NCBI GenBank assembly: GCA_965644295.1
Contig: CBFFRP010000431.1
Location: forward strand, 124,001-188,000
DNA length: 64,000 nt
Direction: 5' to 3'
DNA from: Paraphysomonas bandaiensis
Taxonomy: Eukaryota; Protista; Chrysophyceae
In this document: positions 50,025-63,310 of the stretch, piece after piece
How positions within the stretch are numbered: the stretch's first letter is position 1
Layout: every line of letters begins with the position of its first letter
Notes under the pieces: generated by a model
Told to the model about the DNA's origin: nothing
Databases searched by the model: none
Seen by the model: the letters and a program-made list of their open reading frames with translations, nothing else
Program-made: the position numbers and the translations under genes

Positions 50025-52534
50025 ATGGAGACATCTGATTGCACCATGCAATCGAATCAGATGAAATTCCAGTCTATTCCTATCAAAGAATTCTGTTTAG
50101 GGGTCTTTTTAGTTTGTGGATTTTTATGTTTTTTGCCTTATTATTTGGATCGTACAGCAGACTATAGTGCATTCGATCCACAATCAAGATTCAATTGGAA
50201 AGAATATCGTTTCTTAATCCTTTCATCATCCTCTGCTGCTCTTCCGATGATGTTCGACACAGCACTTGATTATAACATACCATTCCATCAAGCTTTACCT
50301 CGGTGGACCATCGTACTTACACTGACCATTACGAATCTAATCCCGTTTTTCTATCTGAGACAGTTATCAGATTATTCAATTTCACTTGCTGTATGCTGTA
50401 TTTTTGCCAAAGCTATACTTGTTAAAGGTGCTCTTCTTAGTTACATTCTCCACGACGGTTGCAGTATGAGGACCGTGCGTGAGGTCCTGTTGATTTCTGT
50501 TTTTTATATTGCAGGATTATATGTCAAGCTTTGGAAAATATTTGATACGAATGGTGTAACTGTTTGGATGTTAACAGTGAGCAATATATGTACAGGTGTA
50601 TCTCAGTTGGTGTTATTTTTTATATGCGTTCGGCGATGTTATAGATGGCGATTTGGTAAACAGCCGTCGGGAGGGCTGCAAACTTTTTACGCAGTGTTGT
50701 CGTTTTGCGACACACTGATTAAGTATCTTGTGGTAATTTCCTTCAAGCAGCCAACATATATGGTTATTGTGGAGATCGGATTGTGTATACTGGCAACAAG
50801 TATTCCTGGACGTGAGGCGCGGCACCAACGGTCTATAGCAGAGGTACGGCTTGTAGTTACTTTCTTGTTCCTTACATTAAATTGTGACAGCATACCATTA
50901 AATCTAAACGAAACTTTGTGAGCTATATTTCGCATGAACTTCGCACCCCACTGAACATAGTGTATATGGGAATTCAGCTGCTTGCCGCTAATCTTAAGGA
51001 TTTCAAGGGTTTTGATACAGATGACACTCTCGATATTGTCAAAGATGTAGAGGGATCGTGTAGGGTTGCGATTGATATTTTAGATGACTTCTTGATGGTG
51101 AACAAAATTGAAGGCAATAATTTAGCTCTAGAAAGGGAATTGGTACCGGTTATGGATCTCTTACATTCCGTCGTAAACCCCTTCGATATACAGGTAGTGC
51201 AATGTGAATCGCGTATTTCACGATGTAATGAATTTCTGTGAGTATCTGCCTTGTAATTACATTAAGTATGGAATACAAACACTAATTTTATTCTGGTATT
51301 CAGGCTCGCCAAAATAATGTGAAATTCTTGCACTCTGGAAGCGGTCATATTGACCCTGCCATTCATGACACTATGGTAAATGTGGACATCTCCAAGTTTT
51401 CCCAGGTCATACGCAATCTTGTATCGAATTCCCTCAAGTTCACACCACCTGGTGGACAAGTGAACTTGTTTGCATATCTGAAATCAAAACCATCTGCTGG
51501 CAGTTCAGGATCCTTCAACTTTCCGATGGGATCTTTAATTGAGTGTGCAAGTAGTGGACATAATGGACGCATACTTGATGAAACAATTGCCGAATCTGGT
51601 GTGCGACGACTGAAGCGAAGCGGCGCGTGTGTACCTGACTGCTCCATTGTACGAATAGAAGTACATGACACGGGCCCTGGAATATCTCAGGTATATATAT
51701 ATTAACGTCGCCTAAATGCAACTGCTCATGCTCTAATTTCGCATGAATTAAATATATCTGCACAGGAGAATCAGAAGCGTCTCTTTACTGAAATTATTCA
51801 GTTTAATGCCAACAAGCTTCAGAACGGTGGTGGATCTGGTCTTGGCCTGTGGATATCAAACTCTATTATGAAGCTGCACGGTGGGTGCATTGGTGTCGAG
51901 TCAACGATGGGGAAAGGGTCCATGTTCTTCATTGAGATAGATGTTGCTTCGTATGGCACTGACCGCAGTCCACGACTCTCACCTTGCAATCAATGTTCAC
52001 AACGAAATAAATATAGATCCATTGTGGAAGTAGACTGCTCCGGGGTAGAAGGGGACTGGGTAACCTGTTTAAGTCAGGAGGGGGATTGTGAAGTTGGGGA
52101 CAAGCTTCTGGAGAGGGTGTTGATTGTTGATGACTCTTCTGTCAATCGTAAAATGCTCAGTCGCTTAATAGCTCCTAACGCGCGTCATATATTCCAAGCA
52201 GAAAATGGTAGTCAAGCTGTTGATATGGTCGCCAAAAGTAAGGATCAGTATGACTTAATATTCATGGACGTAAATATGCCTATAATGGGCGGAATAGAAG
52301 CTACGACTCGAATAAGAGAGATTGGGTGTAAATGCTATATTGTATTCCTTACAGGCAACGCGATGCCAGAAGATAGAGAATCATATGTAGCTGCCGGTGG
52401 AGACAATGTGCTCATTAAACCATGCAGCATCAACGATGTGGACAACATCGTTCAATGTATGTTCCTTTTGTTTTATTTTAAAACTTACTAACTCTCTTTT
52501 CACAGCTCTTTTGCGACGGAACTGCACGTCATGA
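50025..52534 (+). CDS. Membrane-bound hybrid sensor histidine kinase (TM region-HisKA-HATPase-REC), 5 exons
   Basis: H-box FVSYISHELRTPLN, N-box QVIRNLVSNSLKFT, G1 VHDTGPGIS, G2 GGGSGLGL. Receiver LIVDDS..DLIFMDVNMP..LTGNA..KP. Introns 50844-50890, 51194-51303, 51691-51765, about 52457-52505. Confidence 0.92.
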
Positions 52535-54723: not shown

Positions 54724-56077
54724 GATGTAATAGCAGTATTATTTAAATAATAAGAAAAAACAGAAGGAGAGAAGACGAGCATAATATTACAGAACAATGA
54801 GAAGGTCAAGTGAAACCAACGCAGCTTTGATCAGGGCAAAGCAAAATTTAGAAAACATAAAATTATATACACTATATATATATTATATATAGTAGTATAT
54901 AGACAGGACTCCATCATCCCTTAAGTAGGTATATAGACCCTTTGTTCTCTGAACAAAATATTCATGTACTTCCTCAAGTTCTCTTCGAATAAAATGTCTT
55001 AAAATCTTTCTGTCTGGGGGTTAATAGTTATTAGTTTCACATATAATTATATCAAATACAATTCACAGATACGACTACAACACGAAGCGACCTCACACAC
55101 ACAAAAAACAACATACTGAAAATGGTTGGTTACGATTCAAACCAAACCGCATCTTGAAATGATCTGCAGTTTGTTTGTACATCATTGCCGAAATAGTTTT
55201 GGACTGCACAAGATACTTCCTTCCCACCATACGCAGTATTACTGGCTCGGAGAGTATCTGAACAAACCTTCCAACATCAGTTAGTATATTCAACTATCGA
55301 AGGTTTGTAGTTACATTGTATAATAGTTTTATAGCTTACTACTCATGTGGAGTCCCCCAATCAGTTGCCCGAGGAAAAAGAGTTGATGAACGAGGTCGTC
55401 GAAAGCACTCCAGATACGGCATTAATATTGCGAGTTTAGACAAAGACGAAGATACTACCGATTCTGATGATTTCAGTTTCACGCCGCCAATGAAGAAACG
55501 GGGATTTCAGTGGCACAATATTGAAAATCGGGAAAAAAGACCTCGAAAGTATAGTACGAGGCCACAGCTGGCACAGCCCTTTACAGATGGAGTCGTCCGG
55601 CAGTGTATTATGCACATCGATTGTGAGCACTCTCCAACGGGAATTTTTACGAGCGAGTTACACATAGTGCCTCGCCGAATGTAAATGTACCCACAGTAAA
55701 GGGTACTTCCCCATTAATTATACATGAAGGGGATAAAAAGCTTTGAGGTGACCTGAAGCCCACTTCGTTTATAACTACTACAGGAGCCATGAGGACTACA
55801 AGAGCATTGCGCCCATAGTCACTCAAATTTCTAATGGAAAGAAGTTTTTAAACAAGAATACTTTTTAAATCGACACTGCCAAGCAGCTCCTGTTCTATCT
55901 GCAGTTAAAGACTGAAAGTATAAATTCTGCGTGAACAGACATACCATGTGAACTGAACAAGACATCTCTCATATAAATGGAATGCTACCAAGAACATTAT
56001 CAGTCTTAACCAGAAGTTAATCATACACTTATTAGTCAAGCATACGTACTTGCACTATACTATCAACCTTATAATCC

Positions 56078-59000
56078 TCATCGCAACAGCGCAACAGATG
56101 GTACCCCGTCAACCCCTTTCCACTCCTCGATATTCCTCATTATTTTTTTAGCATGAATATTTTTCGTCACGCCAATTTCCTTTATATCATCGATAGTTTC
56201 ACATAACGTCATCATTTCGCCATCAACACGATTCTTCTCGAAATCAGATACATACATTGATAAATCGATATATCTTAATAGGGAGCAGACCTCATCGACG
56301 GTTAAAGAAGTCAGTGTTCGAGTGCGCGGCTCTCCACCCACCACAGGAGTACTTAGTGCTGTCGTAGAAGTCAATTCATTAGGCTTCTCATTAACAGTAC
56401 TCTCTATACTGCTGCAATCATCCAGTTTTGCTACATCCGTTTCTATCTGTTGAAGAACCTCCACTACTTTTTTAGAAACAGCTGCCAACACCAAGGATGC
56501 GTCGACTACAATAGACCAAGTCAATATGCAAAGGTGTTGCAGAAGCCTCTTTACGATACCCTTAACAGACAGCTGCTGTACATCAGGTGGGATTTCAATA
56601 CCCTTATCTGCTAGCAGTCGTTTAGCTAAACCCAGCGTTGCATCAGGAATACACTCAGGAAGTGTATCAACAGTTTCTTCCTGAAACAAGTCACCGATAG
56701 TATTCGCCAGCTCGTTCCGCTGGCCAAATAGTATGGGAAGTACAATGCGGATTCTATGGCCAGATGCGTGACTACTATTGTGCGTAATGCACGCCAACAC
56801 AACTATCCATTCAAAAAGCAGATTATCTTCCACTGTGGGGTCATGTGTCTGCATCTTACACAGCGAATCCGAAGAAATTAGTGGCACCACGACATACGAG
56901 TTAATTATTGCGTGAACAAGATTCTTCAGAAAGTTCTCCCCCTCCCGCAGTCTTTGACAATCTAAGAATGTACTGACGGCTCGATGTGACGGAGCTAATG
57001 AATACAACGACATTCTATCAAATAAGCCTTGGGCAAATGTACTATCAAACTTTCCCCAACGATATGATATAAATATATCATATTTTTCTTGTGCCTTGAA
57101 TTGTGACAGCCAGCCACCATATCTAGTTGTAATGTCACTAAAGTCAAGAAGGCGACGTCCTCCCCCACCGCCATGTAACAAATTCAGCGCAGTGTGTTTC
57201 TGTACAGATTGTCTAACCTGCTTCAGGCGTATGAGAAGCACATTGCTGGTCGTGCCTTGGGTTGATGAATCAGAGTCAATGTACGGTAATACGGTCATAA
57301 ACAATAGGCATTTCATACACTCGGCAATTGTTTTTTCAATCTGACTCCTGAGTCGCTCATAGACTGCGACTGGACTCTCTCCCTCCACATCAACTCTCAC
57401 AGCATTTTCCCTGTTCATCAGCACAAGGCGGAAACACTGAGATCCAAAATATAATATGGCTTGATCTCGGCGTAAACCACTCAGATCTATTTCTACAGCT
57501 CCAACAGAGGTCTCCAGTGACCAGGAAACAGCTTTACAGATAAGGCGTTCAAATAAGCCATTCGGTAGAAATCCCATCTGACGACAGTCATCCCAGTTCA
57601 ATGTCGTTTGAGCTTGCAAATCCTTCGACGCAGTGAACACAAAATAAAACGTATGAAGCTTCTTTGCTTTCGTCCAGTTATCATCAGATAAAGGTACAGT
57701 ATCAACTGGAAGAAGCGCAGGAGCGAGATACTTTTTAGTCGATAAAGAGGAAGAATCATTAAGTACTGCACTAAAACTGTCAGCAGCGTCGTCGAAATGC
57801 CCGTCTGCTGAGTCGAGCAGAGGAACTAGTAGACCATACTTAACCATTAGTTGAACCAGCATTGCAGCATGCTGACGAACATCCTGCAAGAGAGCTATCA
57901 GCAGAGTACTCGATATCACACCAGATCGAACCATACGACCCCAGTCACTATTGTGCATTTTCTTTACTCTCTTGTGGACATCCAACGAATGGTATGTACT
58001 ATCAACACTGGTGGGTGCATGCTTGCAAATGACAACAGACGCAGGAGTTACAAAGTACTCAATAGGGTCCAATATAACAATATCTCTAAGACCTTCTTCC
58101 GCATGCCACATCACCATTCCCATTTCGTGCAAAAAATACAAAAACTTTGGCACGAAGGACATCTGTATATCGCAAGATAGACAAATTTTTTCAACCTCAA
58201 CATAATTCAGATATGATGATTTCTTCTCCTTCATTCTATCCAAAGCCTTGAGCCAACTGAGCGGCTGCTCAGCGTGTACATAGCTGGAATCATCTATGAC
58301 TTGTTCCACACATATCAAGAGTTTCTTTAATACCGGATCATCTCTACCAAGAGTGTTGTCGACTGGAAAAAAAAATAGATCTGTACAGCCATTGACTCCC
58401 AGCGCACCAGTGTTTTCAACCACGAATGGCCATGCAATACTACTACTAAACATGTCATAGAGAAGTGTCGATATACCTTCATGCTCGCTCACGTCATTTA
58501 TTTTATCTTTCCTTGTCCCAACAAGAAATATCGGTGCCACTGACCCTCCTTCTCCTTGTGTATGGACCACTATTGAGTTCATCCAAAATGTCATGTAATC
58601 CGTACATTCCTCTTTTTCTTTTTCATCGGCCCCGTTACATAGCCATTCCATATTAAACACAAGCAGATAAACTCCATACTTAGTGAGAAAAAGTGGATGA
58701 ATGACATTGAAAACAGACTGTCCACCAAAATCAAACACAGACATGATAACCTTCGAATCAGCTGTTTGAATACTATCTGCAACACATTTCATTACCAGCT
58801 CACTCTCCGGCACATTAGCAGGTTCTGGTGAGCGCCTTTCTTCCTCATCCTTCACCTCCGTTATATTAGGTTTAATAGCAGGCGTATCCAAACAATTTCG
58901 TTCAGCGGATGCAGCCCGTATGTCGGATACAACAGATTCTGGCAGTTGTTGAAGACATGGATTCTGATCATCTACACGTCCATTTACTTCAACTTCACCT

Positions 59001-60626
59001 GATGTATTCGTAAAATAGTCTTCAAACTGATAATCCGTCCCATCCACACACGCTTTTGCCTCTGAGAATGGAATGTCGATTGCAAATTCCATATCAGGGG
59101 CACTTTCTCGCTGCTGTCGCTCATCCATTACCATCATAGCAAGTGCTGCCTCTAGCTCTCTTTCTGGTTTCTTAAATTCATTCCAAATACCAGCACGCAT
59201 AGATGCATATTTCACATCGCAAGTGAACTGATTGATACCCACTGTAGAGCTAGTATCCTGAAAAGATTTTCCAACAATGCTGTTTGTAAGTGCAGTTTTC
59301 CCTGCCCTACCCTCACCGACGATCATAATTTTACTTCTTCCCCAAGGCTTCTTGCCTAATCCAAAGAATAATTAACAAAATAGATCACATCAACGATAGT
59401 TTACCTTTCTTAAAAGCATTCATAAGGTCAGTCTCAGTCAAATTCAGATCGTTTTGGGAGGAAATTAACTTGTTTACGTCTTGAGCATCATCTGACGACT
59501 TCTCTTCTGCCTCAGGGGACTCACTTTCCGGTTCCGTGTTCATTTTATCTTCAGGTATAGTCTTTTTTCCAGTGACATTGTACTTCTTCACGTCCTCTGG
59601 GGGTTCAAGTTTACTAACATTCACAAATAATTCTGTTCCCAATACATAGAGCCGGGGTGTATTTCTTATTCTTGTAGCGAAGTTATTTAGACCATTCTCA
59701 TCATAGCCGGGTAACTGAAACCCCAGTGTATAGCTACCCGCTTTCTCGCATATATTAATAACTAAACATGTTCCGAACGACGATTGCCGAACGCTTGTAG
59801 TATTCTGTAACAAGTATTATCTAGATACGATTCGGTATCATAAATATAGTACAGCTACGACATGTTGTGTTGACATGCATACACGCAATATAAATCGCAT
59901 ACTTACAATGAGAAAAAGGGGAACAGAAACGTTGTATTGAGGTAAAAGTAAGGCGTGCCATACCACCCTGTAGGTAGTAAAGATAAATACTCCGATACTC
60001 CCAGTACTATTCGACAAATTCGACGCCCCATCAATGCGTTCCAATATAACTTCCTTTTCTAGGAGTACTAGTTGCCGTTCTTTATCCACAAAATTCATAG
60101 AACGCATGATTACTTCTCGGTACAGGTGGGTTTTGTCATATGCTCTATTCATGCATTATGCTTTAGAAGTTAGATTGTCTTGAGATTACACGACTCACCG
60201 CACTGCCCTGATTGCATGATTCAGAGAGTCCGCATTTTCGTATCCATATTCAAATTCATATTTGCTAGTACCTCTATTGGCGCGAATACGAAATCTTTCA
60301 TTGGTCACTTGAACTGATACAATACATCCCAATCCTATACAGCAATTCGTTCGTGCTGAAGCACTACTTATAAAGATATATCGTAAAGATGTTACTTGTA
60401 GTTTTCCAGCACTGTTCCCTGATCTCAGGTCCTTCATACCATCAATAGTACCTGTCAGATGACATGTTATGTGTTACATATACGTATATATCAGATGATT
60501 CGTACTTATAAGAGTCTCTCCTTCACAGAGTGATAATACAGATGAGCTCTCATCAAATAATAACAACTTATCACGCATACTATCCTCATACTTCGATGAT
60601 TCCTCTTTACCGAATAACCCCAACAT
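56078..60626 (-). CDS. BBS5-Roc-COR-TIR-SAM fusion protein (Roco family), 5 exons (60506-60626, 60199-60451, 59907-60144, 59405-59804, 56078-59355)
   Basis: All four GT-AG introns keep frame. BBS5: GKLQVTSLR..IGLGCI, KYEFEY, RAYDKTHLYREVIMRS, QLVLL..E...I.G.SNLS..G.IGVFIFT.YRVVWHA..YNVSVP, RQSSFG.CLVI..GSYTLGF. Roc: KIMIVGEGRAGKT, STVG, VFDFGGQ, VGTRKD. COR: PLSWL, FLHEMG, IVILDP. TIR: YDIFISYRW, TFLD..L..G, NLLFEW. SAM: LTVDEV..LL..IDL..Y...F....VDG. Confidence 0.88.
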
Positions 60627-60722
60627 CTTACAAGAATAAGATGCAGATGGGTGCTAGATAATATGGTTACTAAGAGAGTTATACGTTACTTCGGACAGCT
60701 TGTACTGCTGTGTACATTTAGG

Positions 60723-61150
60723 TATGTATGTATGTATGTATGTATGTATGTATGTATGTATGTATGTATGTATGTATGTATGTATGTATGTATGTATGTA
60801 TGTATGTATGTATGTATGTATGTATGTATGTATGTATGTATGTATGTATGTATGTATGTATGTATGTATGTATGTATGTATGTATGTATGTATGTATGTA
60901 TGTATGTATGTATGTATGTATGTATGTATGTATGTATGTATGTATGTATGTATGTATGTATGTATGTATGTATGTATGTATGTATGTATGTATGTATGTA
61001 TGTATGTATGTATGTATGTATGTATGTATGTATGTATGTATGTATGTATGTATGTATGTATGTATGTATGTATGTATGTATGTATGTATGTATGTATGTA
61101 TGTATGTATGTATGTATGTATGTATGTATGTATGTATGTATGTATGTATG
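60723..61150. repeat. (TATG)n microsatellite, about 430 bp, perfect
   Basis: Uninterrupted tatg array. Confidence 0.98.
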
Positions 61151-61302: not shown

Positions 61303-62183
61303 ATGTACACATTCACTAAAATGGTGTGCGGGAAACCGTTCACAACCCGTGAATTCTATTCGATGTGTGTTTACGGCAACATCAGTGCAGATGTCCCTCA
61401 TATTCAACAAGAATCGAGTTGGGACTGTGGAGTTGCCTGTTTGCAGATGGTTTTAACATGGTCTCGTATATCTGACTGTGATACAGTAAGCAGTTTGTTA
61501 GAACTCAAATCTCATAACGACTGGAGCAAGCCACTGTGGACGATTGATATATTTTGCTTCTTAATGGAGAGTGGAGTGGATGCTACATTTTACACTCGTT
61601 TCCTGGGTACTGGCGCTCATCATCAGTCTATCGATTGGTACACGAAAAATATGGGTGACGACGATGTTCGCGTTCAAGAGTTATTTGATAAGGCGACCTC
61701 AAATTGTTGGCCTATAGAAAAGGTAGGGACTTTAGAATTGATTGTTAGTGTAGATCTGATTGTACACATATATTTTAGAGGCAGCTAGGTGTTGATGAGG
61801 TTGCTCGGAGGTTGGATGGTTCAACTGTCGCTATAGTCCTTGTCGATGCTAACATCTTAAATTCGTCAGCGAGGTATTAGAAAGTGCTTTATGTGTTGGT
61901 GTAACTTATTGTACTTTATTTGCGTGTGGTATAGTATTTCGTCTGAGGGGTATTCCGGACACTATGTGGTTCTCTATGGGTATAACTCTTTCACGGGATT
62001 ATTCACCTGTCTTGACCCTGCGAGGGCTTGCGGTAACTATGCATTCCCGTAACGCATTTCCTTCGCTCATATGTACTAATATCAGGAGTACGGTGGGTGT
62101 CAAGCGCACAGCTAGATGCTGCTCGGTGCCACGTTGGTACGGATGAAGATATTGTCTTTTGCCGCAGGCGTCCACTGTTGTAA
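61303..62183 (+). CDS. GUCD1/plant GC1-like ('guanylyl cyclase domain', papain/C39-like fold) protein, about 4 exons
   Basis: VPHIQQESSWDCGVACLQMVL, LWTIDI, IVLVDA, GYSGHYVVLYGY, LDPA and ARCHVGTDEDIVF match the GUCD1 pattern. Confidence 0.8.
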
Positions 62184-62448: not shown

Positions 62449-63310
62449 TTAACTCCTATGATTAATAACCTTTTCAACCAAATCTGGTAACAATTCTGCA
62501 GCGGTGCCTCGCAGATGCATATCGACTACGCCCATAGTAACCAGAGGAGTACGCTCGTCTGGATTTACTTCGATTATAGTGGCCCCTCTCTCCTTGGCGT
62601 ATTGCGGCAAAGATGCTGCAGGGTATACCACTGAAGACGTACCCACCACAAGCATTACATCGCCACGAGACAGAGATTTAGCAGCTGTAAGCGATCTAGC
62701 CCATTCATTTTGTGGCAGGGATTCCGTGAAGAGAGTTACATCAGGGCGCGGATATCCACCGCAAGACTCGCACTTAGGAGGATTCTTTCGAACTGATTCG
62801 TGGAGAGGATCAGGAATGTTGATAGAATCGGCACATTTTATACAGCGGAATCGTTTAATAGTACCATGCACTTCATACACGCTGTCAGGATTAGCCCCAC
62901 TAGCTTCATGGAACCCGTCCACATTCATAGTGATAGTCGAATAGTTACCAGTTTTAAACTGTTTCTCTAACCTTGCTAATGCAGTATAACCAACATGAAA
63001 GTTTGCCGATGCGATAGGTTCATAGAATGAACTGAGGAAATATGACCACACAAGTCCAGGAGTTAAGCTCCACCCTGACAAATAAATGATATGTGAAGAC
63101 ATCCATAATAATGCACTCACCAATAGGAGTTCCACCATAAATAATTGCCAAGTTACCAAATATTCCACTCCAGAACCCTCCACTACCTCGAAATGTATCA
63201 ATACCGCTATCCTTAGACATCCCAGCCCCCGTAAAACACACACAACGATTAGCCTCACTAATTTTTTTCGCTGCTAAATTTAACATATCAGTATCAGTAT
63301 TTGTTGACAT
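62449..63310 (-). CDS. Sirtuin NAD+-dependent deacylase (CobB/SIRT5-like), 2 exons
   Basis: FTGAGMSKDSGIDTFRG, TMNVDGFH, EVHG, Zn ligands CIKC and CESC, RPDVTLF.E, VGTSSVVYPAA, IEVNP. Intron 63075-63120 in frame. Confidence 0.92.

Follow-up and report, generated by a model that had tools for sequence, protein, structure and literature searches.

We analyzed a gene on the minus strand of a 64,000-nucleotide stretch of Paraphysomonas bandaiensis DNA (contig CBFFRP010000431.1; the whole stretch is called the window, and coordinates are given in it). Its product carries a Roc GTPase domain, a COR domain, a TIR domain of catalytic type, a linker and a SAM domain, probably preceded by a BBS5-like module of tandem PH type. 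Judging from sequence and structural models, we consider this protein to be, with a probability of roughly 0.6, a multidomain Roco switch in which the GTPase would gate a TIR enzyme activated by clustering. The preliminary description of this locus had proposed a SARM1-like TIR with an intact catalytic Glu, placed before a SAM domain and gated by Roc-COR. Its coordinates and domain calls proved correct and the observation was confirmed; all the peptide strings it quoted are present in the translation, YDIFISYRW starting at residue 749 (nucleotide 57082) and LLFEW at residue 836.

The open reading frame (ORF), 56078-59326 on the minus strand, encodes 1082 amino acids, ends with the stop codon at 56078-56080(-) and holds Roc, COR, TIR and SAM in one frame, with Roc-COR upstream of the TIR as had been claimed. 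The Roc GTPase (58502..59355, minus strand) was recognized by Pfam (PF08477, E=5.6e-12, 46.4 bits versus a cut-off of 27; Ras, 29.4 bits). The motifs GEGRAGKT (P-loop), DFGGQ (switch II) and TRKD (G4) are invariant among the paralogues described below, and by Pfam and paralogue alignment the nucleotide-binding motifs of this G domain are intact. The domain contains, between switches I and II, an acidic insertion of about 145 residues (58770-59200, ORF residues 42-187), which is poorly conserved and variable in length yet found across the family. Directly C-terminal of Roc, as in Roco proteins, lies the COR region (COR-A and COR-B, 57206..58264, minus strand). COR-A scored 0.1 bit under its cut-off in the window (PF16095, 35.2 versus 35.3 bits) and COR-B scored 21.7 bits versus 27 (PF25497); COR-A was over the cut-off in paralogue L005 (39.5 bits) and matched 32 of 41 full-length relatives at E<=0.001.

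The following region of about 210 residues (56450..57085, minus strand; ORF residues 748-959) is a TIR domain according to profile comparisons and a structural model. With the single window sequence, the evidence was weak (best PDB match the flax L7 TIR, E=0.003), and we therefore collected relatives for a profile. The family profile matched L7 at 4.6e-8, At1g72930, L6 and ROQ1 at about 6e-7, the SARM1 TIR at 1.2e-5 and RUN1 at 1e-4, and two relatives, P0023 and P0001, exceeded the Pfam TIR cut-offs. Given these matches and the many proteins that share the domain, the TIR assignment goes far beyond what chance would produce. An AlphaFold2 model computed from an alignment of 68 sequences (A3) reached a predicted local distance difference test score of 92.8 and a predicted template modelling score of 0.91. 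It has the flavodoxin-like five-strand alpha/beta fold of the TIR superfamily, with insertions after alpha-C and in the alpha-D/alpha-E region. The top 15 Foldseek rows (E<=0.001) were all TIR structures, and the ESM Atlas feature and shape searches returned TIR clusters only. By VIA-align, the model was closest to RPV1 and RUN1 (Z 15.2, 160-165 residues aligned). The superposition on the human SARM1 TIR, which had been suggested as a check, covered the whole domain (Z 13.3, 140/140 residues, 24-25% identity, model residues 9-220 versus SARM1 561-700), and AbTir and the SPARTA TIR came next (Z of about 12.5). The nearest structures are all enzymatic TIRs, namely, RUN1, RPP1, L6/L7, SARM1, TIR-1, AbTir and SPARTA.

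The flax L6 and L7 TIRs, which are the best PDB sequence matches, include complexes of L7 with double-stranded DNA (7x5k-m), and TIRs can decap RNA capped with nicotinamide adenine dinucleotide (NAD-RNA) (PMC10937652). Both points would fit a TIR acting on nucleic acids instead of free NAD+, either as a 2',3'-cyclic nucleotide monophosphate synthetase/nuclease like the plant L7 TIR or in NAD-RNA decapping, a reading that we regard as very improbable, as the similarity of the family profile to L7 spans only the generic N-terminal 72 residues.

The catalytic potential of the TIR domain would depend on the conserved Glu of alpha-C, E839 (E1186 in the spliced protein), whose GAA codon is read at 56812-56810 (56810..56812, minus strand), where the preliminary description had placed it. 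E839 is kept in 67 of the 68 sequences of A3, at 27-46% identity, D789 in 68/68 and G796 in 64/68. The alignment also conserves Y, D, F, S, R and W of beta-A (YDxFxSYRW) and the motif D-N-x-L-x-E-W, and the BB-loop motif FLD...G is likewise conserved in the family. Positions 7-104 of the family profile align to SARM1 563-650; the Glu, at position 96, precedes the end of this alignment by eight positions without gaps, which leads to residue 642. Similarly, positions 3-66 of an independent, truncated profile (A4) align to SARM1 chain positions 34-95, that is, native residues 590-651. By this arithmetic on the end-points of hidden Markov model (HMM) alignments, as distinct from a residue-by-residue alignment, D789, G796 and E839 correspond to D594, G601 and E642 of SARM1; PDB titles name E642A (7cm7) and G601P (6o0v) as SARM1 mutant sites. 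In the searches with the truncated profiles A4, A5 and A6, either plant TIRs made up the best five matches or significance was lost in the short profiles. We equate E839 with E642 because of both the end-point arithmetic and the range of the structural alignment. In the AlphaFold2 model, the first turns of helix 96-109 contain E839, with strand 71-79 before and strand 126-128 after it, and the Glu critical for NADase activity sits at the same helix location (PMC7075850). The by-eye alignment to SARM1 made earlier was reproduced by the HMM end-points, and the assignment of the Glu to the E642 position was borne out by the mapping, the 67/68 conservation and the location in the model.

A Ser/Thr-rich low-complexity linker (56303..56449, minus strand), in which we found no Pfam match and which could not be aligned with the paralogues, connects the TIR to the SAM domain. 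The latter, announced at about 56110-56300, was detected at 56117..56302 (minus strand; ORF residues 1009-1070) by PF00536 SAM_1 (E=5e-11) and PF07647 SAM_2 (E=2.3e-8), with scores over the curated thresholds (43.2 bits versus 23 and 34.5 versus 20.5, respectively). The order TIR then SAM, the reverse of that in SARM1, is likewise borne out by the domain positions. What did not hold was the label "SARM1-like" as worded. Plant TIRs of the TIR nucleotide-binding leucine-rich repeat (TNL) type were equal or better by profile and fold, although SARM1 had the highest identity within the structural alignments, and the SAM domain was closest in the PDB to liprin-beta1 (7.3e-9), followed by caskin and DGK-delta, with Caenorhabditis elegans TIR-1 at 0.0017 and SARM1 at 0.04. 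A specific kinship with SARM1 was thus rejected, the plant TIRs scoring higher and the SAM domain matching liprin-beta1 at 7e-9 versus 0.04 for SARM1. Neither the ARM-SAM-SAM-TIR architecture of a SARM1 orthologue nor TIR and SAM domains closest to those of SARM1 were found. By sequence comparison, the window TIR is best described as its own clade among TIRs of catalytic type.

The genome holding the window encodes two paralogues (G000:C239 and G000:C1) with the same Roc-COR-TIR layout and TIR regions that are 37-39% identical; no SAM domain was detectable by Pfam in either. A word-index homologue search with the TIR-SAM region gave no match, which we ascribe to the length window of that search and to the absence of the protein from the collection. 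We also searched a profile of the three TIR regions (window and both paralogues) exhaustively against 1.84 billion representatives and recovered 1677 proteins at E<=1e-3, of which 674 were at E<=1e-10 and 184 at E<=1e-30. Among 41 full-length relatives, Pfam found Roc in 38, COR-A in 32, TIR_2 in 18, SAM in 3 and ankyrin repeats in 2, with single instances of Laminin_G_3, ART (NAD:arginine ADP-ribosyltransferase), FYVE, EF-hand and CDC48_N and no instance of BBS5 (0/41). One relative, P0001, has a tandem TIR-TIR, and another, P0031, reads FHA-Roc-COR-TIR-SAM. As far as domain annotation goes, this is a large protist family in which Roc-COR-TIR forms a constant core and the accessory modules (SAM, ankyrin, FYVE, EF-hand, lectin-like and ART) differ between members. 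Since the SAM domain was present in 3/41 relatives and detected in neither paralogue, it is an occasional add-on to the core. This supports a pairing of TIR and SAM independent of SARM1, as had been proposed earlier, and the nearest solved SAM structures, which are not those of SARM1, also speak for it.

Based on these data, we propose the following mechanism. The nucleotide state of Roc-COR would control dimerisation or conformation; Roco proteins undergo a nucleotide-dependent monomer-dimer cycle (PMC5714945). The SAM domain may add homotypic clustering, and the clustered TIRs would then build composite active sites in which E839 could cleave NAD+. The outcome, either NAD+ depletion or a signal of the cyclic ADP-ribose (cADPR) type, might belong to stress, antiviral or cell-death signalling. 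Input and localisation would be determined by the variable modules at the N and C termini, and the BBS5-like module could direct the protein to membranes or phosphoinositides, or could be a sensor or decoy. The active site of TIR NADases forms only upon self-association, and the assemblies of SARM1, RUN1, ROQ1, RPP1 and AbTir are among the structural matches of the window TIR. Similarly, many SAM domains polymerise, and DGK-delta, caskin and the SARM1 ring are among the PDB matches of the window SAM.

Several observations weigh against this proposal. Taken alone, the window TIR (residues 748-829) stays under the Pfam cut-offs (PF01582, 18.5 versus 21.3; PF13676, 18.6 versus 28). The superposition of E839 on E642 was inferred from alignment end-points and not seen directly. 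Furthermore, the residue four before the Glu is an Asn, where SARM1 and plant TIRs have a Trp. In most relatives, the SAM domain is dispensable, being present in 3/41, and the prediction of a two-copy SAM complex gave a score of 0.00, which speaks neither for nor against self-association.

The lack of this Trp would also suit a TIR that works as a homotypic adaptor without catalytic function, like those of MyD88 and most TLRs, with TIR and SAM forming a scaffold downstream of the Roco GTPase. Indeed, both domains are classic protein-protein interaction modules, and about 70% of all TIRs keep the Glu, including some regarded as adaptors (PMC7075850). We nevertheless judge this alternative improbable. 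The Glu is retained, together with the beta-A and BB-loop motifs, in 67/68 relatives as divergent as 27-46% identity; the nearest structures are enzymatic TIRs; and most Glu-bearing eukaryotic TIRs that have been tested were active (bioRxiv 10.64898/2026.04.20.719644). In that preprint, TIRs from many eukaryotes produced cADPR in Escherichia coli in a Glu-dependent manner, and the abbreviations of domains in one figure include Roc and COR. This is a functional precedent for eukaryotic TIRs with the Glu as a whole.

We then turned to the N terminus of the protein. In the Roc ORF, the first Met comes 15 codons after an in-frame stop and lies only three residues before the P-loop glycine, while the paralogues carry 40-70 residues ahead of the P-loop. 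Exon by exon, Pfam BBL5 matches revealed a BBS5-like module upstream of Roc (59405..60626, minus strand), with four coding exons at about 60502-60626, 60199-60447, 59907-60144 and 59405-59804 and a start codon at ATG 60626. We aligned RNA contigs of four runs (X8 to X10, species label B; X12, label A) on 55800-60750. In X8 and X9, one contig each extends from 55800-55889 to about 60658 and lacks four GT-AG introns, three of which lie within the BBS5-like module. The fourth, a 49-nucleotide intron (59356..59404, minus strand), is spliced out in contigs of all four runs. With it, the BBS5 stop codon (59385-59387) is lost, and NAFKKG is joined in frame to KKPWGRSKIMIVGEG, with junction residues that align with the pre-P-loop residues of the paralogues. 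Past this joint of the BBS5-like module and Roc, the spliced frame continues (NAFKKG followed by KKPWGRSKIMIVGEGRAGKT) to give an ORF of 1429 amino acids. The gene is thus transcribed and spliced.

We consider the fusion of the BBS5-like module to the Roco protein to be probably real. It is unlikely that the contigs merge overlapping BBS5 and Roco transcripts, the Roco protein then starting at an internal Met. Logan contigs cannot strictly prove a single molecule, and there are in-frame Met codons in the last BBS5-like exon. However, the 49-nucleotide intron is removed in four runs, in frame and together with the BBS5 stop, and upstream of its first Met the Roc exon shows an in-frame stop but no other ATG, whereas the paralogues have 40-70 residues at this place.

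If the 49-nucleotide intron were retained, the BBS5-like ORF would end with KKGKLSLM and a stop at 59385-59387, and the locus could give either a stand-alone BBS5-like protein or the 1429-residue fusion; among the contigs of the four runs, none retained the intron. A loose end of one X10 contig at about 59488-59498, considered as an alternative 5' exon, maps to G000:C599:17190-17225 (L012) and has only about 10 nucleotides of microhomology (ATCTGACGA) with the window, and we judged this contig chimeric. A perfect (GTAT)n microsatellite of 107 copies (60722-61150; 100% matches, no indels) belongs to the fusion gene's promoter or 5' region, as it lies upstream of both the transcript contigs' 5' end (about 60659) and ATG 60626, by about 60 and about 95 nucleotides, respectively.

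A canonical BBS5 gene is present elsewhere in the genome (G000:C80:137119-138429; loci L006 and L008-L010), covers Pfam positions 1-334 and scores above the window copy. The fused module is therefore a divergent second copy. An in-frame BBS5-like module might suggest that the protein is an LRRK2-like trafficking or ciliary Roco, using BBSome-type membrane recognition in flagellated gametes, with TIR and SAM as regulatory or localisation modules; Roco kinases do work in membrane traffic (PMC9290818). This seems quite improbable to us in view of the better-conserved canonical BBS5 kept elsewhere, the conservation of the catalytic TIR motifs and the occurrence of BBS5 in 0/41 relatives, whose accessory modules show the kind of variation known from immune receptors.

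The proposed GTPase-gated TIR enzyme can be compared with several known systems. With SARM1 and C. elegans TIR-1, it shares a SAM domain and a Glu-bearing TIR with equivalents of D594, G601 and E642. However, the domain order is reversed, there is one SAM instead of two, and the protein has no autoinhibitory ARM domain, Roc-COR and the BBS5-like module being found instead. The plant TNL and TIR-only proteins (RUN1, RPV1, L6/L7, ROQ1 and RPP1) provide the best profile matches and the best fold matches (Z 13-15, 155-165 residues), and the TNLs also join an NTPase switch to a TIR effector with a catalytic Glu. Their switch, however, is an NB-ARC STAND ATPase and not a Roc-COR GTPase, and the window TIR lies C-terminal to the switch, not N-terminal as theirs does, in a protein without LRR. 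Bacterial TIR effectors (Thoeris ThsB, AbTir, SPARTA TIR-APAZ and TIR-STAND/Avs-like proteins) have the same fold and catalytic Glu (Z of about 12.5) and act upon oligomerisation, a likeness that is only predicted for the window protein. Unlike them, the window gene is eukaryotic and intron bearing, is fused to a Roco and has no operon partners. Finally, with Roco GTPases (LRRK2, Chlorobium tepidum Roco and Dictyostelium Rocos) the window protein has in common a tandem of Roc and COR in which P-loop and switch II are intact, but it has neither kinase nor LRR and carries a TIR-SAM output and a large acidic Roc insertion.

Proteins combining TIR and ROC-COR have been annotated in Aplysia (PMC9334734), and a TPR-ROCO-TIR has been reported in Chondrus crispus (PMC11378527); of diatom ROCOs, the latter study says only that a species has at most four copies, with no TIR mentioned. 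Compared by their descriptions, these ROCO-TIRs likewise unite Roc-COR and TIR in a single protein, for which a role in immunity or signalling has been proposed. Unlike the window protein, they are Pfam annotated, with no C-terminal SAM or N-terminal BBS5-like module reported. Both ROCO-TIR architectures and catalytically competent TIRs from diverse eukaryotes are thus already in the literature, and our findings extend known ideas without overturning them. We found no description of the Roc-COR-TIR family in the literature. New here are the recognition of a Roc-COR-TIR family of very large size, in most of which Pfam misses the TIR; the tail in which SAM follows TIR, which provides a second origin of the TIR and SAM pairing independent of SARM1; and the BBS5-like fusion.

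By analogy, the family layout resembles that of immune or death receptors of the STAND and NLR types (NLR, nucleotide binding with repeats rich in leucine). A transcribed Roco with an enzyme-type TIR, from a family that spans over 1600 clusters and whose accessory domains can be swapped, represents a testable candidate for an intracellular immune receptor system. We know of no characterised intracellular immune receptors in diatoms, whose blooms are shaped by viruses and programmed cell death. It is possible, though doubtful, that Roc-COR-TIRs are GTPase-based, NLR-analogous receptors for innate immunity or programmed death in diatoms and other marine protists. In these, a Roco switch would take the place of the STAND ATPase, and swappable sensor or decoy modules (here, the duplicated BBSome subunit) would trigger TIR NADase signalling boosted by SAM polymerisation. 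If true, such a receptor system could bear on virus-driven bloom termination.

Outside the Roc-COR-TIR trio, the genome contains at least 11 further TIR_2-positive ORFs (123-877 amino acids; for example, C280:32850-33173, C111:17249-17572 and C25:44814-45227), which are over the Pfam cut-off and more canonical. The genome therefore has a sizeable TIR repertoire. In the window, the neighbours of the gene are a hybrid histidine kinase (HisKA-HATPase-receiver) with a multi-pass membrane N terminus at 50025-52491 (plus strand), a Guanylate_cyc_2/C39-like protein at 61303-62052 (plus strand) and an NAD-dependent Sir2-family protein at 62449-63310 (minus strand). A functional tie of these genes to the TIR gene is at most conceivable. 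The genome itself is 62.5 Mb in size, contains introns and encodes at least seven silicon transporters in addition to BBS5. On such features alone, the source would be taken for a marine, probably centric, diatom. Parts of the stretch are also present in marine metagenomes and in metatranscriptomes of polyadenylated RNA.

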